Below are positions 10,951-41,929 of a DNA stretch of 64,000 nucleotides, one piece after another; positions within the stretch are counted from its first letter, which is position 1; each line of letters begins with the position of its first letter. Below the pieces are notes generated by a model. The model was not told the DNA's origin, did no database searches, and saw only the letters and a list, made by a program, of their open reading frames with translations. This DNA comes from Laetmonice hystrix (lineage: Eukaryota), in contig OZ249445.1 in assembly GCA_965235115.1 (NCBI GenBank), positions 11,036,001-11,100,000 on the forward strand, given 5' to 3'. Made by a program: the position numbers and the translations under genes.

Positions 10951-11994
10951 ATGTCACGGCAGACCATCCCAATCTCGCGTGGAAATAATGAAAACGTCAT
11001 AACAGTCCGTCCAGAAACAGCGACCTCCTTCAACACTATGCAACGCGACATGGAGGACGAACTAGAGCGCAGGCGCAAGGATTGGGAGCGGGAGGTGGAA
11101 CGCATGCAGCAGGACTTCTTCCATTTAAAATCTGACGACGACAGTGAAAACCGTAATCTGTCAATCAAACTGGGCACGTCTCCTGGACGTGGCGTCGGAA
11201 CCAGCGTCATCGATATCAACAACGCCAAGACGTTGTACCAGGAGAAACCGGACGGTTCAAGGACGTACCGTCTGCGCTTTGACCTCACCGGCTTTGAGGC
11301 TCACGAGGTTCGGGTGAAGGCCGAGGGATTGAAGCTCCACGTGAACGCCTGGAAAGAGGTCGACCATGGCAGCGGGCACAAAAGTACCAAACAGTTCAGT
11401 AGGCAAATTGATATTCCGGACAACGTCAACCCAGACAAGCTGATGGCCGTCATCAACTCAGATGGCTTCCTGACCATTGAAGCCCCGGTATGTGAGCCGA
11501 CAATACCCATACAGACCACCACGACCGAGACCCCTCTTCTGTCCCCGCCACAGTATTTTTCCGTGGTACGTTCCCGGAAATCTCCGCCAACCAGTCCCCG
11601 TGTGAGTACCGTCACCAGCAGCCTGGGTCGGTACGGTACGGGTGGGCCCATGGTGGTGAGCGTCAATGACACGCGCAAGTTGGCCATGGCAGTGGACATC
11701 GGGCCCGAGTTCAACCCACAGGATGTGACGGTCAAACTGATCGGCAACAAACTCCAGGTCCAAGCCAAACACGAGGAGACAATTGGAGGGCGCACCTCCA
11801 AACGGGAGTTCTCCAGGGAGTTTGATCTCCCCGAGAGAGTGGAGGAGAACACGCTGCGAGCCATGCTTAGTCTCGATGGTCGCTTAGCAATTGGCGGCAG
11901 TATCCATGCCAACAAACTGCACTCTGACGCCATCGATTCAGTGATGCGGGACATGCCAATAGATGGCAGGCCATGCAGAATCGTGATAATCTAA
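10951..11994 (+). CDS. Small heat-shock protein with two alpha-crystallin domains (p40/major egg antigen-like), 347 aa
   Basis: Uninterrupted ORF. ACD1 is LRFDLTGFEAHEVRVKAEG...FSRQIDIPDNVNPDKLMAVINSDGFLTIEAP. ACD2 is MAVDIGPEFNPQDVTVKLIGNKLQVQAKHEE...FSREFDLPERVEENTLRAMLSLDGRL. The N-terminal RRRKDWEREVERMQQDFF motif is shared with the paralog at 21156-22076. A splice acceptor TTTTTGTTTCAG ends at 10912, so the CDS lies in one exon after a 5'UTR intron. Confidence 0.95.
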   Translation: MSRQTIPISRGNNENVITVRPETATSFNTMQRDMEDELERRRKDWEREVERMQQDFFHLKSDDDSENRNLSIKLGTSPGRGVGTSVIDINNAKTLYQEKPDGSRTYRLRFDLTGFEAHEVRVKAEGLKLHVNAWKEVDHGSGHKSTKQFSRQIDIPDNVNPDKLMAVINSDGFLTIEAPVCEPTIPIQTTTTETPLLSPPQYFSVVRSRKSPPTSPRVSTVTSSLGRYGTGGPMVVSVNDTRKLAMAVDIGPEFNPQDVTVKLIGNKLQVQAKHEETIGGRTSKREFSREFDLPERVEENTLRAMLSLDGRLAIGGSIHANKLHSDAIDSVMRDMPIDGRPCRIVII

Positions 11995-21155: not shown

Positions 21156-22076
21156 TTAGCGAAGAGAAATTGTGATTTGCGGCTTTTTTGTCGAGCCCGG
21201 GCGTCCAACATATGAGCCCTGTTGGTAGCCTGGGATTGGAGCCTCCAGAATCAGTTTACCGTCATCTGTCATCGACGCCACCACTGTATTCGGATCGACG
21301 TCTTCCGGAAGTTCGAACTCTTTGCTGAATTCACGCATGCTCGTCCGGCCTTGCGACTTTTCTTCGTGTCGTGCCGTTACTTGCAACTTCCGGTCGATGG
21401 TTTTGACGGAAATGTCGTCTGGGTTGAATTCGGGGCCGATGTCGACGACAAACTTCATCATACGTGATGCCTCCTGTTCTGTGAGCATGGCGCCGCCGCT
21501 GTACTCACGGGGTAGGGGCGCGGCGTGCAGGGCCGGCGTCTCGGCCTGAGTGGCGTTGTCTACTATACGGTCGTAATGGGGGGCGTCTACTTTAGCCTCA
21601 ATTGTCAGGATTCCGTCTTTGCTAAGTGTACAGTTTAATGCCTCTGGATCAACGTGTTTGGGTATGTCGACTGTTCGGCTGAATTCACGGCTCACGTTCT
21701 TTCCTTCACCTTTTTCCTCGTGTTTTGCGTGTACAATTAACTTATTCTCTTCAGTGCGGACTCCGATTTCCTCGGCACTGAATTGGCTGACATCAAAACT
21801 AACTTGGAACCTTTTATTACCTTTAACGTCATCGTGAAATATATGGTCCAGATCCATAGTTTCCAGAAGATTTTCACTGCTTCCCCGGCGGGTTTCGGTC
21901 GGTTTTAACCGGAAAAAGTCTTTGCGCATGCGTTCTACTTCACCCTCCCATTCCCGGCGTCTGCGCTCCATCCGGGCATGGACGTCATCCCAGATGCCTT
22001 TTTGCCGTTCTTCAAATAAATGGCTGTCCTTTTTTATAGGGACAAATACTTCAGACTTGAAAGTTGGGTAAGCCAT
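21156..22076 (-). CDS. Small heat-shock protein with two alpha-crystallin domains (p40/major egg antigen-like), 306 aa
   Basis: ATG at 22076 in CACCATGG context (MAYPTFKSEV). The ORF track's start at 22097 is a non-ATG codon. ACD1 is FQVSFDVSQFSAEEIGVRTEENKLIVHAKHEE...FSRTVDIPKHVDPEALNCTLSKDGILTIEA. ACD2 is FVVDIGPEFNPDDISVKTIDRKLQVTARHEE...FSKEFELPEDVDPNTVVASMTDDGKLILEAP. The C-terminus has an I-T-I motif. A splice acceptor TTTTCTTTGCTTACTTGCAG ends at 22118. Confidence 0.95.
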   Translation of the reverse strand: MAYPTFKSEVFVPIKKDSHLFEERQKGIWDDVHARMERRRREWEGEVERMRKDFFRLKPTETRRGSSENLLETMDLDHIFHDDVKGNKRFQVSFDVSQFSAEEIGVRTEENKLIVHAKHEEKGEGKNVSREFSRTVDIPKHVDPEALNCTLSKDGILTIEAKVDAPHYDRIVDNATQAETPALHAAPLPREYSGGAMLTEQEASRMMKFVVDIGPEFNPDDISVKTIDRKLQVTARHEEKSQGRTSMREFSKEFELPEDVDPNTVVASMTDDGKLILEAPIPGYQQGSYVGRPGSTKKPQITISLR

Positions 22077-24058
22077 GGTGTAAATGGAAAGAAGCACTTG
22101 GTCTTCCGGCGCTAGATCTGCAAGTAAGCAAAGAAAACGAGAATTAGAAATTGCTTGCGAGTCCGTTTTATCGTTGAAACTTTCAGTTCATTGACTTATA
22201 AATCAAGTTAGAAAGTACCTGCACTCTATAAAAGATATAAAACTTTAATTCAATAATTTAATATGATATAATGTATTTCATATTGATCTTAATTGAAGGT
22301 CAATACTCTATATTCAAGGACTTTTATAAAACATTTCAGAATACTTCCGCCATTCTACCGTTGAACGTCTCATGAAATGATATTGTGTGGAAGCAGATCT
22401 ATGTGACTCACGTACCCCGGACCCCGCCATAAATATGTAAAATACTTCATCTCCAATCGGGGAAAAGAAACTTTATATTCATGGCATAGCTTTAAAAGCT
22501 TTTGATGTTGTCTGAGCTGGCACTTTGCCATCTTTTTTGAGTGTTGATGAATTCTCATGTCATTATCCATACTATTTACACAGTGAATACATACACGGCA
22601 CAATCCTGAATCACTGTCCATGATCCCTTAGTTCGTTGATACCTCTTAAAATCTTAAATCACAGTCTGTATTTTAAGGAAAACAGGACAAATCCTTTGGG
22701 GGGGGGGGATTGTAAGGACCCTTGTGACTCTCTAAATACACAACTACCTTGTCAATATTATGTGGAAAGAAATCTTATAATGGAAAGTCGCGCAGCGTTT
22801 CATATTTATGCTTATATTTATGGCGAGACGCATGTTGGGGCCGCCATTTTAGCGATTTATGTTGGTATTAAAGGTCACGTGTTACCGTGGTATGGCAACC
22901 CGAATTGACCCATTCTCCATAAAAGGTAATCCAGGAAGGCCAGGAAACACGTTTGATGACGTGACCTATAATTGCTGTTGGCCACATGTGATGAAGTAAT
23001 ATTTTAGAGTGATGCTTCATAAAATCCTACAACTATAACTTGGGCCTGCGAACCATCAATACCAGCTCCATCAACAAGACCATCAAGAGAGAGAGAGACG
23101 TATTGCCTGGCACCACGGACGTCCACCCCTTCATTTATATATCAAACAATACGCCGTCATTTCACCACATAGAGTAGGTTACAACACTGCTCCCAGGCTC
23201 ATATCTTAATAGGGAAGGCAACAGAACCTGATGTGGCTTCGCCGTTATTGCACCCTTGATGGGAGCAGGTCATGGGCCACTGACACAGAGAGCATCTGGT
23301 GCAAATCATTGATCATTATCTATTGATTTCTGGTGTACGTGTGTGGGGTGTCATCAACCACATCACATACCATGACCGTGGAGCAATGCCTAACCAACAC
23401 CAACTCCCACAATGTGCGCCCTGGCCGTTACCAATGAGGTTTCACAGACGTCATTAACCAGTGTTTACCAAACGGCGGCAAAACGGAGAGGAGAAACTAG
23501 TTTCAACAAAGTGTGATCCTTAGCAACGGGGCGATTGATGGACAGAACGGTCTGGCAAGTTTCTCTGGCAATTGCAGTCTTCATTATGGTGGCTGTAGCT
23601 GTCCGTGATCCTCGATAAGATCACTTGCCGGGCGCCCTGCCCGGTGTTTCCCACCCTTCTACCGTCAGATCGTGTTGACCCACATGTCAGCCAGATGGCC
23701 ATGTCCATCGACGTGCATCTGTCGTCGGGCCAACGTTACGCAATAACTTTTTTTCTCTGACACAAGTAAACTCGGGCCGTCCGGCTGTGTATACAATATG
23801 AATGGGCCCTCCAGAATGGCCACGGCGACATGTAAAAGCGCTTAGATGTGTCAATTATGACATTACAAACTTGACAAATCGGGTGGACAGGGTTACCGTG
23901 TTCGTTTACACCTTTTACATAATATATACAGACATCAAATTAATAGCGAAAATGACAATGGCAATAACCTATCCAGTTAGTATATTCAGTCTCTAATCCC
24001 TTCCCTGCTACTACCTTGGTGTGGAACTGGTGCCATCAGGGGTACAAAAAGCCTACCT

Positions 24059-27200: not shown

Positions 27201-29383
27201 TGTTGTGGTAGGAAAGTGTGGGAATTATGCAGGGACAAGGATGTGGGTTGGTAGATGTCGGATACTGATGGTTTATAGGCCCACATACACAGTGATTCTG
27301 GCTACGAAAGGTCCTTGTGACAGGCTCCCATCAGCACAGAAATGGTGTATTGCAACGTTTTACATGACACCAATTGCATTCCCGCCTGATCCATGCTCAT
27401 GGGGCTCATATGCTTTTTACGTGCCAATGTAGTTACACTTAGAGTATATATATTTCTTATTCATGGGTCACATATAAATATTTCATATACATATGCCAGC
27501 GTTCACTTCTAGCTGCCCTTGTAGCTGCATGCAGAATGTAGAACGCGGCCACTGGGGGAAGGCCATCCATCATGTTTCCATAATGGACCAATACAAGTAA
27601 CTGTTCGGATAACAAATACGATTATACCAAGTCCCCGAGATGTAATTGTATTAAATCCTCGTTATTTACACCTACTGACGGATCTCTCTTATATTTAATA
27701 TATAGATTATCTATTAGGTACGTTAAATGGACTATGAGATAGTTGATTATTGTATTGCCTATTGGTGTTTAAATACAACCTTGTAGCCGACCACTATAAT
27801 CCAATCTAAGCGCGGAGTGGGTTGGTTTGTTTAGTTTATCTCCCACGCACGGTGCCCCCTGACCACAAGTAAATATACTATTGTGTGTTGTGAACAGATG
27901 GAACATGTATTCCTTTACGACCGCCATGTGATGTGGCTGTAGGCCGTGTACGTGTCCCGGGAACACTGGAGGCTGGCAGCTAACTTCTCGTTGACCCCGA
28001 CCCCACCCCTCCCACCCCCTTCCACCCGTCACTGGGGTCGCCAGAAACCCTGTCACCACGCCTCAAACGTCGGACTGATCTAATCTCATGTCTGGCCCAC
28101 ATGTGTGTAACCAAGTCCAAGTGAATCCCCCCACCCCAAATCTTTCAGGAATTTTATCATTGTGCCATTGTTTATACCTTGGGCCTATCTGTTGCACACT
28201 GTTGCCCACATGAAATATTTACTTTCATAATAGGTACTAATGTTACACTGTAGTGTGATAAGACTAGACCTACATATGGGCAAACTTGTAAGAATAAATT
28301 CTCTCACGCCGGGAAATCACCTTGTCAGTGATTTTCAACTTCAAATTTCAATTTCCAACTTTGGCACCATCAAACTAACTACCGCCCCCAGTCTGTGGGT
28401 GTTGCTGTTATATATATGTGTAACAGAGTCATGCTGTGGTAATCTGAGACGGCCTTGATTATTTTCATAACTAATTCAAACAACACGTTCACCACTTGTA
28501 TATGAACACTGCCGAGCGTAAAATTAACCGCAGCATGAAATGAAGCGAAGTGAAATCCACATCGAGTACACTTGAACTGACGTCGCCTCGTCAAGTATGT
28601 CAGCCGTGAAATCCACTGACCGAAGATTGCCAGGCGATATTCGTTAATTGTTTTACGTTAATGGCAATATTAATTACTATATAGTGGATTAAAATTACGC
28701 AGCATGTGATTGGGTGCGGGGTTGAAGTGAGATGAGTCATCGATTAGTGACGAGTCGGCCGACGCCAGGGCCGACCCGGTCTCCAATGACACATCTCAAC
28801 CCAACATGCCCAGTGAATTCAAGTGCCACCATTTTATCTCCATACGAATTTCACGGATGACGAGACGTTTAATACGTCAATATGCTATCTCTAGATATGT
28901 GCCTATACTAAATAACCTTCCTTTTTTACATTTTCGCCCCGACACAAATTCGCTCATGTTTATAAAATTGGCCTCTCGATGTGCCTTTGTTATGTATGAG
29001 TCATCCACGCTAACATGTGCTTTATCAAAGATTTAGTTGGAAATGTGTGTAGTCAACTATACCAACGTGGTGACATATGCTTTAGGGCTCCCAACTTGAC
29101 CTCTTTAAAAGACCTACATATACAGGGTCGATACCGTCACAATGCCTCTATCGTTGGTGGATATTATATAAGCCTACACACATTCCAGAGGGCTGACCAT
29201 GCAACATCATCCACTTCCTCATAATAACTTGGAGACTGACGATGACAGCACCACAGAAATGGGGGTGGCGGGAGGGGAGGTCAGCTGTTTGAGATCAAGA
29301 AAAATATGGCGGATATCCACAGGCCTTACAGCCATTATACAATAAAAAGGAGGTCTTTGTCGGAAATCTGTCAAAGGAAGAGA

Positions 29384-29526
29384 NNNNNNNNNNNNNNNNN
29401 NNNNNNNNNNNNNNNNNNNNNNNNNNNNNNNNNNNNNNNNNNNNNNNNNNNNNNNNNNNNNNNNNNNNNNNNNNNNNNNNNNNNNNNNNNNNNNNNNNNN
29501 NNNNNNNNNNNNNNNNNNNNNNNNNN
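29384..29526. other. Assembly gap (143 N)
   Basis: Run of N. Confidence 1.
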
Positions 29527-30906
29527 AGACATAGGACCCATTAACTAGCCTTAATTTAGTCACAAGCACAGCCACATTTTCAATACCATTATCTATACCT
29601 CCCACTACATCTCGGTATAGGAAAGTGTCGACGCAACGCCACATGGGCGACCTTCCAATCGCTCGGGGCCCATTTGCAAAGACCTGATCGCAACCAATCG
29701 TAATTAGGTAGCCGTGGGGTGTGAAAGGTCGTCCCACTCCAGCCTGTGATGTGCGTCCCCTGGGTTCATACCCTCGTCCTATCAGGGTGTACATGAACCC
29801 TGAGGATATAGTGCTGATAGGTCTCGCACTGTGACACCCCATGCAACTGTTCCTAGTAGGTTTAGATATGTTTATAGGTGGATATAACTGTGGTTTCCAC
29901 GACCCATATTTCTGCATCCAGCACACGGCCATCTGATTGTGTCGAACATCAAGGACATAGAACGGAGACGCTGCCCGGAGTGACCGCTCCCTCTCACCCA
30001 CCCATCTACCCGGTCTCCAGGAATGTCCCGAATGTTATGCATGTCCTCTCACCGTCCCGTGCACGTGGTGCTGAATGCTGGCCAAATAACTGATCAACCT
30101 CTATGGTAGGCCAATCTACTCTTTGTCCAATAACTCCAATTGCAGTTCCAAGTATACAAGAAATAATGATCTTATTTCTAGGAAGAATGTAACATTCCGG
30201 CTATCAGGGTCAAAAATCTTAGTTCAAGACACCAACCCAGTCTCAGTTAGTTTCATTAGACAAGGATACACATACAAGTAAGGGGTGCATCATGTATGGC
30301 TCCAGAATCTTGGCAATTATTCACCGGCGCGGTATGAGTCCAGTTAAGATCACAGATCAGGGATTGCCCAATAAGAGCCCTATATCTAACTGACCTTGGA
30401 TGTCCTAGTTCTATGTTACCCTTGCACCGGGGCTCTGATAGATAGGGGTGTGAGAACCATATGAAGGAATTCCACCAATGTTGGAGGGATACACTGTTTT
30501 GCTGGGTGAGTCCCGAGGGTCAAGATAACGTTTGCCTCAGCAGGAAACTCCACAACAAACCAAAATCAACTAAGTAACTGGATCAATCGGGGTATATCTG
30601 ATGGCAAACTCGGGAGCTGCACTATTTCAATTTGACGCACACTTATAAAGATTATAGTACATTTGTAACTTCCAAATTTGCATTAATGCTTGACCACAAA
30701 GGGCTACAGCTTGCTGGTCATCTGTCTTGTTTATGCAGCCTATATTCGACACACTGAATTCTCTACTGGTTATCAAGAAAATGCCGAAGGTATAATGCCG
30801 CAATGAGTAAAGTTGTTTAATCGCTGTTCATTTACCCCCAAGCTTGCACCCAGTGGTAAACTAGACCTGCTTACATTATAGTCTGGATGATAGAGCGTTC
30901 ACCTAC

Positions 30907-34200: not shown

Positions 34201-37159
34201 CTTACAGTATGTATCAAAATCCTTATAGCGAGCCGCTCACTCGGACAGGAGGACATCAATCTACTGCCCCCCTATCACTCACTTCATCTAGGTGTGTCAC
34301 TATAGAAGTCCTACCACATGAGGTACACACAACATATCCTCATACCCCCTTCCATGCCCTGCCCCGAACCCCCTCACCTTAATACAGAGATGATCGATAC
34401 GACACACGCAAGTCACATGACAATTCTTTTGTCTGCAGAGACTACCTCCTTACTTTTTGCTTTCTTGACGTGAGTGTAACAAAATGTTTAACCCATTTTT
34501 TTCAGCCAGAGGTCCCTTGCCAATGAGTCTGTGACCTTCGAGGACGTTTATTTTATACCTGCTTAAACCAGCCAACTTGACTGCCCACGGGCGGCAGTTT
34601 GGTGTGGTACGCCAGCAGAAAATTTAATTATATGTAGCTGCTATGTATTCTTTTCTTTAAAAAACTTTTCCTATCTTGGTGAAAGTGTTTTTGTTAAAGC
34701 AGGACGATGTCGGTCCTGATTTAGTCTTGCTGTGTGTTCGGTACCACGGCCCAACTGCTGTCGGACGGTCGACTATTAGATCAACACGTTTGAACTTCTC
34801 AGCTGGCTGGACCGAAATGAATTACAGCAAAAGAAGAAAACAAAGGTCACCGCTTGTAAATGTAGAAGGCAATTTACGTTCAGGAGTGTAATCAGGTTAG
34901 CTCGTGAGGCTTTGTTACGTGTGAGCTGAGATGGAGTCAAGCGTGAAATGAACCAGGTCGATGAATTGGTTGAACTAGATTATAAATTGACACAAATCAT
35001 TATGAAGTCTCCAACACTGTACTAGGAAATGCCAACATATGCGCGTGCCATTTCGTGCTGTGTTAAATCGACGAACGCTTGGAGGTCATTACAAGGAGGA
35101 ACCGGCGAGCACGCATGCGCGGATTATAGTGAATCCGACTGACGTATATCAGTGATAGACCTATACTTATTTACGTATAGACTTTTTTTTATATCATAAT
35201 ATATGACTGACAGAGCGTCTGGGTGTGTGTATTCTATGGCAGTGATCGCTGAACATGTGACCTGAATAGCACCTCAACCAGATGTGGTAGAGGTTGTTGC
35301 CACTTGTTTTAATCTTCAATCTCATGAGACGTTGTATCACTAGATTTATACGTGAGCTATGATTCCATGGAAAACTACACTTGTTCATTTCTATATAACT
35401 TCACATCCCTTGATTCTGAACTTTCGGAGATTCCCCGGAAATCAGCAAACTGAAACCTCGCTGGGGATAAATCAGTATAAACTTAGATATCCACATCCTA
35501 CATGACCTAGACCTCCTGCTTCATTTGTGGCACTGGGGGCTGCAGTGGGGTCTGATTGAACTCCGGGTCCCTGTAGGACCATCAATAATCTAATTTCATT
35601 TGACAAAATACGATAATATATTACCCAGGGACGTGATTTGTAGGGATACGCCCATTACCCTAAGCAAGGCGAACCCATAAACACCCATTGCTATGGCCGT
35701 GATGGGTATAGGCATAGATCACTCGATTACTATAAGAGCATATTCCTTTAACTGCCCGAGGTGAGGCCAAGTTGGGGTGGGATACATGGGCACTGTTGTC
35801 GCCATGACCCCAGAGTGGCACTAGCCAGGAAACCATGCACCACTCTTTTAGTTCAGACGGCAGCGATACTTTCGTTCTCAGTGTACCGTCCGCAGTTCTC
35901 GTATAGACACCAGTATTTTATATCTAACACCCTCTACATCCCACTTCAGTATCTCCATCACCTACAGGCATGTGTAATTAAGGAAGTTAATTACTCATGA
36001 GAGGGAAAGTTTTTTTGTTTTTGAAAATAAAAGCAGGACATTCAAGATGCTGAAGTTTCTCACACCTTATAATAGCTGGGATATCTCTGTAAATATTTCG
36101 TGTCTTCAAAATCGAATTTATCATTGTATGAGTTACTTGATTTAATACAATCCGTTATCGCAACAAAAAACGTAATAAAATTATTCGGATTAGTAGAAAA
36201 TATTAAATGGGACTGTACTACACTCAACGGTAATTAAAACTCTGCGAGGACAGAAATAGAACATGTGGCTTTGATTTCAGCCTTGTCCGGATCAGTGACT
36301 TCTGATTGGCAATTTTGTAATCTCTATGGCTGGTCGAACCTCAAGGATTTCGAGTTTATTTATATCACAGAGATCACATCTCCTCGGCCGTGACACAGAA
36401 TGTGGCCAGCCTGTACTGAGGCAAATAACCTGTAATACAGGCGCAGACAAGGAAAGGAGAACTTTTTCTCCTTCAAAATAAACATAGAAAATATATCAAT
36501 GATTAGCATTAAATTGAATACATTTGTACTTACAAGTGCTGTGAAGATATGGTAAAATTGTCAGGAGAGGGAAACCTGGCCATGACACTACATCCATAAT
36601 CCCCAAATTCCAGTTATCTCGATTGACCTTTTTAGTGTTATAATCCTCTGTGTAACATTAGACCATTGCACCTTCCCCTGTTCATGCACCTTTCCTGTAC
36701 AGACAATTATGAGAAACTATCGTTTGGTAACCAATCCTTTCACAACCCCGAACGACGTTCTAAAACTTGCATTTAATCCATTTAAATCATAAATCAAAGA
36801 CCTAGATATTTTACAAACTTTAATCATCTTTCTAAAATACTGTTGATATATAATTCGATTTTAAAAAATCGATATAATACAAACGTTTAAAAAGGTGTAC
36901 ATAAATAAAAATGGAAATAAAACCCACACATATATATATATTCACATGTATAAAATGGAATTTTTGAAGGAACCCCCATAGTTCTGTTGTTTCAAACCAT
37001 TCGTTCAGCCTGAGCCGTAGAACACAGCCAGTACATGGAGACCTATTCTATATCAGGTCCCACATGACTTGTGCATGTGTATGATATTTCAGTTATCGAT
37101 ATTCTCAGGATTTGAAGCATTGTTTACCATATAGAAATTGTTCGTGAACGCTGCCGAGG

Positions 37160-37432
37160 TCAACACATCATTGCTGCCTCTACACTGAGAACACCGTCGT
37201 TTAGTTCGGCCTCCACCGTGTAGGGGTCGACACTCTCCGGCATCTCGATGGTCTTCAGGACGGCGTCCGACCGACTCAGTACGAGTAGACGTTTGTCGTC
37301 TGGTCGAACTGTGACGTCACTGCTCTCATACCCGGACAGCGCGATGTCAACATGTACGATCTTGGTGCCGTCTTTCTCAAGGATGACGGGGGTTGAGTCG
37401 ACCGTCTCGACGTTTGTAGTCTGTGGCGCCAT
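37160..37432 (-). CDS. Minimal 90-aa single alpha-crystallin-domain (sHSP-like) protein
   Basis: VHVDIALSGYESSDVTVRPDDKRLLVLSR-SDAVLKTIEMPESVDPYTVEAELNDGVLSVEA aligns by eye to ACD2 of the neighbouring sHSPs, with a deletion of about 10 aa. ATG is in GACATGG context, preceded by acceptor TTTTCGTAATTTTCGCAG ending at 37449. Confidence 0.85.
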   Translation of the reverse strand: MAPQTTNVETVDSTPVILEKDGTKIVHVDIALSGYESSDVTVRPDDKRLLVLSRSDAVLKTIEMPESVDPYTVEAELNDGVLSVEAAMMC

Positions 37433-37798
37433 GTCGCACGGTAAATTACTGCGAAAATTACGAAAACACTTGAAACATGATTGTGAACGTGGTTTTTCTG
37501 TGTATTTCCGATCATGTAACAGCTAAAGGTCCACTGGCAAGGGGGCAGAGACGACAAAACCTTAATTGAGAATAGGATTTAGCTATTACAGGTAGGCCTA
37601 TACAGACTCAGGTTGTCGGGAGACCTAAGCATGTACATTCAATTGTAAAACACTACGAGAACGAATTTAAGTTTGGCGGGTAGATGTACACGGGGGGGGG
37701 GGGGGGGGCACTCTCTTCTCATTAAGAGGTTCAATGATCTCAGGCGACATAAATAATATATTCAGCAAATGCCAGGTCAAATTCAAATAAACCTTACC

Positions 37799-38085
37799 TT
37801 CTTGTGATCGGTCCCTCTAGTGTTGTGAATGGCTGAAATAGTCGGAGTCACTCTCTTCCTTGTGTACAGATCCTTCTCTCGTGAGTCCACCTCAAACTTA
37901 GTCTATCCCAGCCCCTTTCTGCCCCTTTTATACGATTCCCTCGCAGGTAAACGGGGTAAAGTGATGTCAGTATATATTCTGGATGAGGATTAGTTGGATG
38001 TTGAGTGGTATCTGGGAACCAGCTTCCTGATTCACCCGGTTTGTCAGCCACCCCCTCCCCAGACTGGTATCTTCTGGAATACCTG
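37799..38085 (-). promoter_or_regulatory. TATA promoter, HSE-like element and non-coding exon 1 of the 90-aa sHSP
   Basis: TATAAAAG at 37932-37925 (minus). An ATG-free exon of about 100 nt ends at donor AAG|GTAAGG (37799/37798), giving a 350-nt intron to 37449. cTTCt-gGAAt-aCCTg at 38071-38085 has two perfect HSE pentamers plus one degenerate. Confidence 0.6.
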
Positions 38086-38211
38086 CAGACGGGGAACTCC
38101 CGGAGGTGTATATTTGTTTTCCTCCCGTACGTACGTTCACGGGATGAGTCAGCGGGCAGGTATTCCGACCTGGAGGACGCGTGTCTGACTGGTCGGCATC
38201 ATTCATCCCCA

Positions 38212-38270
38212 CTCCTCCTCCTCCTCTTCCTCCTCCTCCTCCTCCTCCTCCTCCCCCTCCTCCTCCACCT
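38212..38270. repeat. (CCT)n microsatellite / polypyrimidine tract
   Basis: About 19 imperfect CCT units. It explains the poly-Pro and poly-Leu ORFs at 38181 and 38005. Confidence 0.9.
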
Positions 38271-40663
38271 CCGACTCAACTTGAGATACGCCCGCCCACT
38301 TCTCTCCCCCATATACACAAGTCACGATATCGTCTGCCATTGGAAGCTGACCGAGAGATGCTTCATCATGTCATATCATGATTCAGGGAAGGTTTTTGTC
38401 AAAGTGTTTGGCTGAATGGCCAACCAACGCCGAAAAATCGTCAATTCTAAGTACATTAAAAAGGGACTTTATTTTATATGCTTGACTAGGACCAGTGGAC
38501 CACTTGGAGTCCTAGGCAAAGGACGTTAAGTGGAAGGTCATTGGGAACGTTACTCCATGTCAGGTATAGAATTGTTCAAAGAGGCGAGCCTAGAATCTCC
38601 TATAGCATGCGTCACACGTACATCATGATACATTTCTCTGAAACCACATCACCAGCGTCTACAGCAGAATCTCAGACATGTTTATTAGAGACAGATTTAT
38701 GGCTATGCCCTGCTCTCCTCTGGCGTATGGGCACTGCACCACATTCTACTGGGGATGATGACAACAGATCAAATCATCTTCTTCTACGAACACTGCTCCC
38801 TTCCTGATTTTCTAAATATAGGCCTGCCTCCCCGCCCTTCATGATCTTTTTAAATATACGACGTCTGCTCATTGACACACACTAACCTCTAACAGTGCTC
38901 GGTGTACATATCACACCGTCCACCAATTTCCCAGCTGACGATGTAAACACTATTAGTTGTGCGGACTCTCTTCAAACTTCCGTGACTTCAGAGTAAAGCC
39001 TGATTACCCCACTGAAGGCCCAAGATACCGTACCCGACATGTGGAAGTCATGTTAAAATGGTCGTTACACTTCAGGCAAAGACTGTGGAAAATCGCCTTT
39101 AACATTTCCTCATAAATACATCTATTTTTGCATCTCCAATTTTAACGGTGTTTAACATTCAGAAACAAATAGAAACGATTTTATGTGAAGTACTCCAGAT
39201 GAATGTTCTATTGCAATGTATGAAACGTGGGGAACGTGCCTCCACCAAGGCCCCTAAAACAGGCCTCATACAGTTCAGAAATGACTGTGCCTCTAATCCT
39301 TTAGCGCTGTATAGGACCTGTTTAACACCTGTGTGCCTCCCCCTGGCCTACCGTTCTGGATCTGGTTCTCGAGTGGAGACCGTGAAAAGAACACCTCCAT
39401 AGAGCATCAGGTATATCACGGTCTGGTGACCGGACCATGAGATACGGGCCCTTGAACTACTCGACACTAACACCTAAAACTCCTTGATCCGATACACGCC
39501 CGCCCAGGGTGTGCCTGGATCTACCTGCTCTGGCCGGGTATAGTCTCAGTCAGGACGTGTCAGGTGGCCAACACACAGGTACGTGATTTATACCATCGCA
39601 CTAAACCTACACCCCCGAGAAGTCTACAGAAAAGATCGACGAAACACAGCAAAACGACCTAGAAATGTTATAGACATTGGAAAGGTAGGTTTATCTAAAC
39701 GGAAACTGCCTATACTTCAATCTTGTCACCACGTTATCCCAAATTCTGCACATCAGAGCCCTTTCTAAGCCTAACAGTTGTACAATCATGTATAGGTATA
39801 CGTATTATATGAGAATAGATAAGACAAAAATTGTAGCTCTAGAGTCAAATCTGATGATACGTTTGGGCTAGTCTATTAAGTAGACCTATACGTTAAAAGA
39901 TAAAACCACTTTTTTCACCAATACTTCAATTGAAATATTTTCCATTTAAAGTATCTTCAATATTCTGCGGGGTGTTGAGAATATTAGCCAAAACTTTATT
40001 GACGCAATCTGTATTGCACATAATAGTTCATCATCTTGCGAAATAAGAAGTTTGTTATGAATTCACCTACATAAATTTACGAATAGTATCATGAATACTA
40101 AAATCTAACAACTTAAAGCGCCATGAAAAGTAAACCTCCATCAGCACCAGCCGACCCAGATATTACGGTACCGAGTGACGCCTGGCCTAGAACCACTCTG
40201 CCGTAGCCATAGAAACCAAACAAAGCAAATTCCTTTGCATGCGAACACCATTACCAGGCCGATCCAGCACATGGCGGACCAAGCTCTTCGTTCCATGCCC
40301 CTGTGTATTGCATGTCTCTTTCAACAAGCTGCAGTCAAAAGAAACGTTCACGGAACAAGCTATATTTTCCGGGCTATATGTCCTACATCTGTCCGTTTAG
40401 AAAGGTTGGGTTAAAATAAGCTCTCTTATTAAATCGTTCTTCTTATATGATCATATCCATAAATAAAAACAAATAATCAGTAACCTTGTCGAGTTACGAG
40501 TACATTTCACAACTTGATATCTTAGACATGCTCTATTCTGGTATGTGAACTGCGGTAAATAATAATGAAAATGGAAAAGTCATAATGTTTGAAATGTTTG
40601 TATACTATATAACTATAAGCACCTTTGTTTCTCTATCTTCCTATCACAGATAAAGGTACGACC

Positions 40664-40786: not shown

Positions 40787-41929
40787 ATGACATCGATTAT
40801 GAATACCCGACGAAGAATCCTAGTATTCTTTTTTGCCATAGCATTTGGACTGACCATACTGGTCACTCGTTTGAACAATTCCTTTCAGGCGGGTAAAACA
40901 TCCTCTGACGGTATTTCTGGGCCACAGGTCGAAAGCGATTTGGACCAATTATTACAAACCACCTTGTCAGAAACGTATGATGGTACGCCTCTAGAACCGA
41001 CAGAAGATATGGTCAGCGATAACGAGTTCAAGACGCTTATTGAACGTTCATTTAAAGGACCTGTGTGGTCAGGAATTCTTGGAAGAAACAATACTGTGTT
41101 CTATGAGGGGAACACAACGAATCAAACGAACGCCATCATAATGAAGCCAACTGTCAGTGCCAGACGGTACGACAGGCAAGTGGTACCTAATATAGTACAT
41201 TATATCTGGTTCGGCACGCGGCGTCGGTTTGAATTCCTCTACTACCTGAGTATATTAAGCGTCTACATGATTCAGCGTCCTGAGGCCATCATGTTCCACC
41301 ACAACGCCATGCCGAACGGATGGTGGTGGGACAGTCTCCGTAAACGAGTACCACTCACTCTGGTCTACCGCAGTCCCCCGCCTACCGTGTTCAACCAGAA
41401 CCTGAACACCTCCGATCCCTACACTCCATACCACCAAGGGGACCTCGCCAAGCTCGAGGTGCTCATGGAACATGGTGGCATCTATATTGATCTGGACGTC
41501 CTCGTCCTCAAAAACTTCCAACCCCTCTTTCACTACGACATGACCTTGGGCAAGGAACATCTGCCCAAGTTTATAGCAGGCATAATAATTGCAAGAAAAA
41601 ACGCGCATTTTCTGCATCTATGGTATGAATCCTACAAGGACAACTATATGAACGACTTGTGGGATTACAATTGTGGGAATGTACCGTATTTCCTGTACTG
41701 TGTACACCCTTCCCTCCTACACGTGGAGCCGCGCCGTCTGACCACGCCAGACTGGTTGGATCGCCACCTACTGGTGGAGGAGGTCATTGACTGGCGAGAA
41801 CAGGGGCTCTACGTCCTGCACGCCATGAGCCACGCCTGGTCGGACAGGTTAACTCCTCAAAACATTCAACCCCAAAACTCAACCCTCACTCAGGCAGCAT
41901 GGTTTATATACTCAATGTCAGAATCATAG
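40787..41929 (+). CDS. GT32-family (DXD sugar-binding motif) glycosyltransferase, alpha-1,4-GlcNAc/Gal transferase-like, 380 aa, type II membrane protein
   Basis: Basic N-tail plus TM helix (RRRILVFFFAIAFGLTILVTRL), then a stem region. Family motifs VPNIVHYIWFG and DLAKLEVLMEHGGIYIDLDV (DXD = DLD). The CDS is in a single exon. Confidence 0.9.
   Translation: MTSIMNTRRRILVFFFAIAFGLTILVTRLNNSFQAGKTSSDGISGPQVESDLDQLLQTTLSETYDGTPLEPTEDMVSDNEFKTLIERSFKGPVWSGILGRNNTVFYEGNTTNQTNAIIMKPTVSARRYDRQVVPNIVHYIWFGTRRRFEFLYYLSILSVYMIQRPEAIMFHHNAMPNGWWWDSLRKRVPLTLVYRSPPPTVFNQNLNTSDPYTPYHQGDLAKLEVLMEHGGIYIDLDVLVLKNFQPLFHYDMTLGKEHLPKFIAGIIIARKNAHFLHLWYESYKDNYMNDLWDYNCGNVPYFLYCVHPSLLHVEPRRLTTPDWLDRHLLVEEVIDWREQGLYVLHAMSHAWSDRLTPQNIQPQNSTLTQAAWFIYSMSES

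Follow-up and report, generated by a model that had tools for sequence, protein, structure and literature searches.

The window, i.e. the whole 64,000-nucleotide stretch of Laetmonice hystrix DNA that was analysed, carries on its minus strand the complete coding sequence of a mini-ACD protein (37160..37432). It runs from ATG to TGA over 90 codons and encodes 90 aa with a computed mass of 9.75 kDa and a computed pI of 4.20. The gene consists of two exons that are separated by an intron in the 5'UTR, such that the coding sequence lies wholly within exon 2. All parts are located on the minus strand: exon 1 (37798..38003) provides at least 206 nt of 5'UTR, the intron (37449..37797) measures 349 nt and has GT..AG borders, and exon 2, as found in the RNA contig (36995..37448), comprises 16 nt of 5'UTR, the coding sequence and at least 165 nt of 3'UTR. 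This structure was obtained from a 680-nt contig (record 25) of run X4 (58 Mb of contigs), which covers positions 36995-37448 and 37798-38003, joins 37448 to 37798 (CT..AC on the plus strand) and has zero coverage of the intron. Four public runs of one sample contain the locus, three of which resemble genomic DNA. None of the runs is recorded as RNA; X4 was taken as RNA because its contig shows the GT..AG joint and no intron coverage. X4 is the only run behind the RNA support and stems from the same sample and study; its contigs give no transcript ends, strand, expression level or response to heat.

Within the spliced leader of at least 222 nt an upstream ATG is absent and an in-frame stop is located 24 codons ahead of the start codon, so that the 90-aa ORF constitutes the entire coding sequence. 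The start codon is flanked by a G at -3 and a G at +4, and the coding sequence is identical between the RNA contig and the assembly. A preliminary description of the locus had proposed an open, intact and expressed reading frame in a good Kozak context, preceded by a 350-nt 5'UTR intron. This gene model holds: the spliced X4 contig bears out the intron, and the reading frame is under purifying selection (see below).

Beyond the 3' edge of the RNA contig, which need not be the true 3' end, the closest poly(A) signals obtained in a scan are ATTAAA motifs at 36824 and 36777. The 3'UTR of the RNA contig differs from the assembly by insertions of 16 nt and 3 nt (37084, 37125) and by four SNPs, and it probably represents the other allele. 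Two variants within the coding sequence occur in the DNA runs X2 and X3, one being synonymous (37238 C>G) and the other exchanging serine 38 for glycine (37321 T>C, Ser38Gly); these are probably allelic. The 5'UTR intron contains a poly-G/C run of ~20 nt (37693-37712) at which the read contigs end, and a GGA/GAG-type microsatellite is found upstream of the gene (38205-38290).

Promoter-like elements, namely a canonical TATA-type box and an HSE-like site, had also been proposed for the mini gene. The TATA-type TATAAAAG is indeed present on the minus strand (37925..37932), yet it is situated inside the transcribed contig. Since the X4 RNA contig reaches up to 38003, i.e. 71 nt upstream of TATAAAAG, the element is not established as the core promoter. 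Upstream of the RNA contig, at 64-76 nt from its 5' end, lies the HSE-like TTCCAGAAGATAC (38067..38079, minus strand), which has one mismatch to TTCnnGAAnnTTC. Matches of this quality do not exceed chance frequency in the window (14 found versus 16.1 expected by chance), such that the site does not stand out from the background. An HSE signature shared with the two-ACD genes of the window was not found; the other one-mismatch sites near these genes are located within a coding sequence or downstream of the gene.

These two-ACD genes are the relatives of the mini gene within the window. The mini gene is followed on its own strand, 15 kb downstream, by a two-ACD sHSP ORF of the p40/Tsp36 type encoding 313 aa (21156..22097, minus strand; first ATG probably at 22076), and a second two-ACD sHSP ORF encoding 347 aa is found on the plus strand (10951..11994). 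Both match Pfam HSP20 twice (E=8e-32 and E=7e-25, respectively), both are intronless, and both have an I-x-I-type C-terminus, with ITI in the 313-aa ORF (...ITISLR) and IVI in the 347-aa ORF (...RIVII). These neighbours of the mini gene correspond to two-ACD sHSPs of the annelid type. Double-ACD sHSPs of annelids were reported in silico in 2022 (PMC9075518), and a 2026 earthworm study (PMC13226371), which styled itself the first annelid report, added expression data for the stress response. On its other side the mini gene is accompanied by a divergently oriented single-exon ORF for a glycosyltransferase of 380 aa (40787..41929, plus strand; PF04488 with the DXD sugar-binding region), which has a hydrophobic N-terminal segment. 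A further ORF at 29219-30001 includes a run of N, i.e. an assembly gap or a masked stretch, which gives X in its translation.

The 90-aa protein belongs to the HSP20 family (PF00011), for which it scores 26.8 bits against a gathering score of 20.8 (E=5.5e-6) and hence passes the Pfam cut-off. AlphaFold2 predicts a seven-strand ACD sandwich with a mean pLDDT of 79, and alignments of 5 and of 22 sequences resulted in the same model. The predicted strands at residues 16-20, 23-31, 40-45, 48-53, 58-63, 74-78 and 81-88 were assigned to beta2-beta5, a short beta7, beta8 and beta9. The ACD fold that had been expected for this protein is thus predicted for the monomer. In agreement with this, the best PDB matches of the model in Foldseek were the HSPB7 ACD, Tsp36 and the alphaB-crystallin core, with a probability of 1.00 to ACDs. 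At the sequence level, the family profile matched Tsp36 in the PDB with E=4.9e-15 and HSPB2/6/7/8/1/5 with E values of 1e-6 to 1e-4.

The comparison of structures with VIA-align gave Z scores of ~10 against many ACDs, and scores of 9.0-9.6 against the CS domains of PIH1D1 and Sgt1 and of 8.6 against Shq1 were nearly level with these. Taken by themselves, such values would fit a functional convergence on a CS/p23-type domain, in which the seven-strand sandwich, compact and equal in size to a CS domain once the loop is gone, would act as an Hsp90-type co-chaperone module. ACD and CS domains share one fold, however, so that the Z scores carry no functional information, and the sequence ancestry of the protein is clearly that of an ACD. 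A CS-type Pfam family was not found up to E=10; the search returned only HSP20 and a sub-threshold match to KH_SLS1. We therefore consider such a convergence very improbable.

The protein deviates from a canonical ACD mainly behind beta5. In metazoan ACDs the beta6+7 strand provides the dimer interface. According to the preliminary description 15 residues of this region are replaced by 5, which would remove most of the strand. The count was right, as SDAVL is aligned opposite HEEKSQGRTSMREFS by MAFFT. When the protein was aligned by BLASTP with either ACD of the 313-aa ORF or with ACD1 of the 347-aa ORF, a gap of 10-11 residues appeared right behind '...LSR', and alignments of the family profile to Tsp36 and HSPB2 contain a gap of 10-14 residues at the same site. 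The gap precedes a kept segment, '...EF.r.y.LP', which is aligned with the second half of beta6+7. From HMMER and AlphaFold2 it follows that ~10 residues are gone, but that the loss is smaller than had been described and comprises the L5/7 loop together with the strand's first half. About half of the strand is kept, and appears in the model as a six-residue beta7 (58-63) that is linked to beta5 by a four-residue turn (54-57). A canonical extended beta6+7 strand with its conserved Arg is missing, and the column aligned to this Arg is variable. A homodimer prediction, carried out with two copies, without an alignment and without controls, gave a score of 0.03 compared to a mark of 0.32, a value that counts neither for nor against a dimer.

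Both termini are short, as had been described. At the N-terminus 15 residues precede beta2 and 22 precede beta3, in line with the earlier count of about 20. The first ~15 residues are disordered and of lower confidence in the model, with pLDDT values below 50 at residues 5-11 and block means of 45-47 for residues 1-10 and of 74-77 for residues 11-20. A substantial N-terminal region is lacking, and only 'MAP' is conserved there within the family. At the C-terminus the protein ends with ...EAAMMC, i.e. 2 residues past the modelled beta9 and 4 residues past the conserved E-A, where most family members stop; the preliminary description had put the end 4 residues after beta9. An I/V-x-I/V motif is absent from the C-terminus of the 90-aa protein, in accordance with the preliminary description.

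Textbook values for the size of sHSPs range from 12 to 43 kDa. With 9.75 kDa the protein falls below this range and is devoid of known oligomer-building elements, yet it is conserved and expressed, and it can be considered as a natural experiment on the bare ACD.

Proteins of this kind have been described before. In a survey of 23 annelids de la Fuente & Novo 2022 (Front Physiol 13:817272; PMC9075518) defined purely in silico a 'Cluster A1' of sHSPs, which was found in annelids only. Its nine complete proteins have 89-91 aa, masses of 9.7-10.1 kDa and pI values of 4.1-4.3 (PMC9075518, Table 1), and are characterised by a very short L57 loop, a V-(R/K)-P motif in beta4/L45, the absence of the conserved beta7 Arg and very small domains at both the N- and the C-terminus. 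The window protein agrees with this class in length, molecular weight, acidic pI, short L57 loop, V-R/K-P motif, tiny termini and the missing beta7 Arg. Its VRP is located at residues 42-44, and the spacing from VRP to LPESVD amounts to 19 residues versus 29 in a canonical ACD2. In a tree of 104 columns with a midpoint root only, it is placed on one side of a branch with 100/99 support together with P0003 (E. torquata ID13), P0006 (A. marina ID7) and P0007 (Polygordius ID7), all three of which are listed as A1 in the supplement of PMC9075518. The identity to the Cluster A1 member of E. torquata is 53%. We found nothing essential in which the window protein differs from Cluster A1, of which it appears as the orthologue of another species.

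The mini gene occurs in a single copy in the 627-Mb assembly, and it is very probably the single-copy orthologue of the Cluster A1 sHSPs in this annelid genome. The reading given in the preliminary description was thereby largely overtaken, since Cluster A1 is a short sHSP family already described in silico. As the class had been published from sequence, the value of the present work is confirmatory and contextual. Beyond PMC9075518 it provides a verified gene model and locus, the conserved 5'UTR intron, RNA support, evidence of purifying selection, the linkage to two-ACD genes, a long-loop relative (P0039, see below) and a 3D model. In the literature we did not find biochemical or expression studies of Cluster A1, but only the 2022 in silico paper and the 2026 Eisenia paper on double-ACD sHSPs (PMC13226371), the latter without mention of Cluster A1.

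Database searches returned relatives of 89-91 aa at 76%, 58% and 53% identity. The family comprises ~28 short proteins, and all named members are from annelids (Eunice torquata, Arenicola marina, Polygordius, Protodriloides, Flabelliderma and Lamellibrachia). The positions of the start (MAPQ) and of the stop are conserved among the family proteins in the MAFFT alignment. A comparison with the 58%-identical orthologue (L004) gave dN=0.33 and dS=1.17, i.e. a dN/dS of ~0.29, which is approximate due to the saturation of dS in this pair but is not near 1; third codon positions account for 45 of the 94 differences. The mini gene is under purifying selection, judged from this comparison of coding sequences. 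One protein model departs from the family length: P0153 (Lamellibrachia satsuma KAI0222182.1) has 218 aa, falls into one 90%-identity cluster with P0018, a family member of 90 aa, and is probably a mini sHSP fused with adjoining sequence.

These data bear on the trivial explanation that the ORF is what remains of a duplicated two-ACD gene in decay, or that it arose by chance. Its shortness and its linkage to two-ACD genes would fit such an origin. A pseudogene or chance ORF is, however, ruled out by the spliced transcript, the length of 89-91 aa in distant annelids, the dN/dS of ~0.29 and the conserved start and stop, which leaves this explanation a negligible probability.

Conservation extends to parts of the gene structure and of the locus. 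A splice acceptor is found 0-9 nt ahead of the ATG in L004/L005 and in L006, which indicates that the 5'UTR intron is conserved. Outside the coding sequence nothing was alignable at the DNA level between the window and the orthologous locus L004/L005, where neither a glycosyltransferase nor a two-ACD gene was found within ±10 kb of the orthologue. Next to P0001, the orthologue with 76% identity, the relative position and orientation of the glycosyltransferase ORF of the window are taken by a gene for 372 aa that matches PF04488 weakly.

Outside the family the closest sequence relatives are two-ACD sHSPs (Tsp36 with E=4.9e-15 and the Clonorchis protein P0010), and the profile matches in two-ACD proteins are mostly on the C-terminal ACD. 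As a class, these proteins (Taenia saginata Tsp36, PDB 2BOL; the p40 'major egg antigen' of Schistosoma and Clonorchis; the annelid forms of PMC13226371) measure 300-430 aa and combine two ACDs of full length with a helical N-terminal region, a canonical beta5/7 loop and a C-terminal I-x-I. The mini protein in contrast has one trimmed ACD and none of these features.

The long-loop relative P0039 (L006:10001-10357, L007:10001-10357) helps to order the steps of the shrinkage. It is a short single-ACD gene of ~100 aa counted from its MAP start and carries A1 hallmarks: besides the MAP start, these are V-R-P, LPESVDPFTVEA and an end at ...APLTC. At the same time it keeps the canonical 29-residue spacing from V-R-P to LPESVD, including '...GFREFNKEYRLP'. 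Its splice acceptor lies 9 nt ahead of the ATG. In L006 a two-ACD gene with 57% identity to the 313-aa ORF of the window is found at a distance of 8.4 kb, and in the midpoint-rooted tree of 104 columns P0039 branches basally, on the two-ACD side. From its sequence P0039 is a possible intermediate in the shrinkage of the family.

The data show in part that the A1 family and the ACDs of two-ACD sHSPs are sister lineages, and that the family is still genomically linked to these sHSPs. Its origin may have started with a local duplication of a two-ACD gene, the copy of which would then have been cut down to a tail-less single ACD. Subsequently the loop would have been deleted once, in the A1 stem, and a few members (P0023, P0046) would have re-expanded it with unrelated sequence. 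This order of steps is likely, as far as can be judged from a midpoint-rooted tree of 104 columns.

Canonical sHSPs assemble by means of three elements, namely an N-terminal region, an I-x-I tail and a long dimer strand. As the 90-aa protein has none of them, large assemblies are most likely not formed. We propose that the mini protein is a small, non-oligomerising 'specialist' ACD, which binds a short hydrophobic motif of a partner on its beta4/beta8 face. From the combined analysis we assign this reading a probability of roughly one in three. The working face would be formed by V-R-P at the end of beta4 together with the L7/8 loop and beta8 (LPESVDPFTVEA), which belong to the best conserved parts of the family. 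The highest frequency of the top residue (0.90) is found in the L7/8 loop and at the start of beta8, and V-R-P and beta9 are also among the best, while the frequency is lowest in the beta5/7 turn and in beta7 (0.32-0.42). Part of this signal is generic, since the L7/8 motif 'LP..VD' is, to our knowledge, conserved in all ACDs.

By alignment to alphaB-crystallin, we take V40, V42 and P44 together with V73, A75 and L77 to be the residues lining the beta4/beta8 groove; this mapping is based on the sequence alignment and on the general structure of alphaB-crystallin rather than on measured coordinates. The proposed working face would line this groove, which accepts hydrophobic motifs of the I/V-x-I/V type in other sHSPs. 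The partner could be the tail of a two-ACD sHSP or a specific client, comparable to filamin C for HSPB7.

Two features of the protein could allow for some self-association. An edge-to-edge pairing could still take place via beta7, which in the model is an edge strand of six residues. In addition, the terminal Cys, which is present in 16 of the 22 members of the family alignment, could give disulfide dimers. The Cys was also considered as an invariant residue, which was rejected as 4 of 13 proteins (P0007, P0014, P0019, P0024) end in G, F or S.

A narrower version of the partner idea had been put forward in the preliminary description: an obligate monomer, the groove of which would bind the linked two-ACD sHSPs at their C-terminal I-x-I tails, such that it caps or terminates their oligomers. 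Both two-ACD neighbours end in motifs of this type, as does the homologue in L006 (ITV), and the mini protein itself is tail-less. In another genome (L006) a short single-ACD gene is likewise linked to a two-ACD gene, and the groove-side residues are conserved. On the other hand, the genes are 15 kb apart here, the L004/L005 orthologue has no two-ACD gene within 10 kb, and the linkage may merely reflect the origin by tandem duplication. Moreover, any ACD groove is expected to accept I-x-I peptides, so that a specificity for the linked partners is not implied. We consider capping of the linked sHSPs decidedly unlikely.

Extended to the whole of Cluster A1, the proposal would be that its members are obligate non-oligomerising trans-regulators, which dock via the beta4/beta8 groove either onto linked I-x-I tails or onto the dimer interface of a client. 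This we regard as unlikely, though somewhat less so than capping alone. If true, it would amount to assembly capping and to an invertebrate, deletion-based parallel to HSPB7 and filamin C, and Cluster A1 would provide a natural 'ACD-only' modulator of sHSP oligomer size.

For a specialist ACD that does not oligomerise the best comparison is human HSPB7 (cvHsp), the ACD of which (PDB 8RHA/8PA0) was the top Foldseek match to the mini protein and for which a mechanism of the proposed kind has been described. HSPB7 is monomeric and a weak general chaperone, and it uses its beta4/beta8 groove to cap FLNC d24 at the dimerisation interface (Nat Commun 2025; PMC12046049). In contrast to the mini protein, it keeps a full-length beta6+7, having lost dimerisation via two substitutions instead of a deletion (PMC12046049), and it has N- and C-terminal regions. 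HSPB7 was traced within chordates (PMC12046049). With an identity of only 21% it is an analogue of the annelid protein and not a member of its family.

Alternatively, the mini protein could be a self-sufficient minimal chaperone or a small homo-oligomer, comparable to the ACD cores of vertebrate sHSPs or to Hsp12. The Hsp12 proteins of C. elegans are nematode sHSPs of ~110 aa with a complete ACD; the annelid protein is ~20 residues shorter because of the deletion of loop and strand. As far as relayed by PMC13628057 (Leroux 1997, Kokke 1998), Hsp12.1/12.2/12.3/12.6 are minimal sHSPs that have very short N-termini, lack a C-terminal extension, form monomers or tetramers and show little or no general chaperone activity. 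The mini protein, which we liken to them by description only, shares the very short N-terminus and the lack of a C-terminal extension. That such minimal sHSPs exist, and that HSP-12.6 has a specialised muscle client (PMC13628057), speaks for a minimal chaperone, as do the intact (predicted) ACD fold, the frequent terminal Cys and the description of the A1 family as the most hydrophobic among the annelid sHsps (PMC9075518). The N-terminal region, which is the carrier of most client binding in sHSPs, is however absent, and among the strands conservation is lowest in beta7, on which canonical dimers rely. A chaperone of this kind appears rather unlikely, ranking behind the specialist ACD and ahead of a tail-binding cap; it could have a narrow activity, show none in vitro, or serve a specific client independently of other sHSPs.
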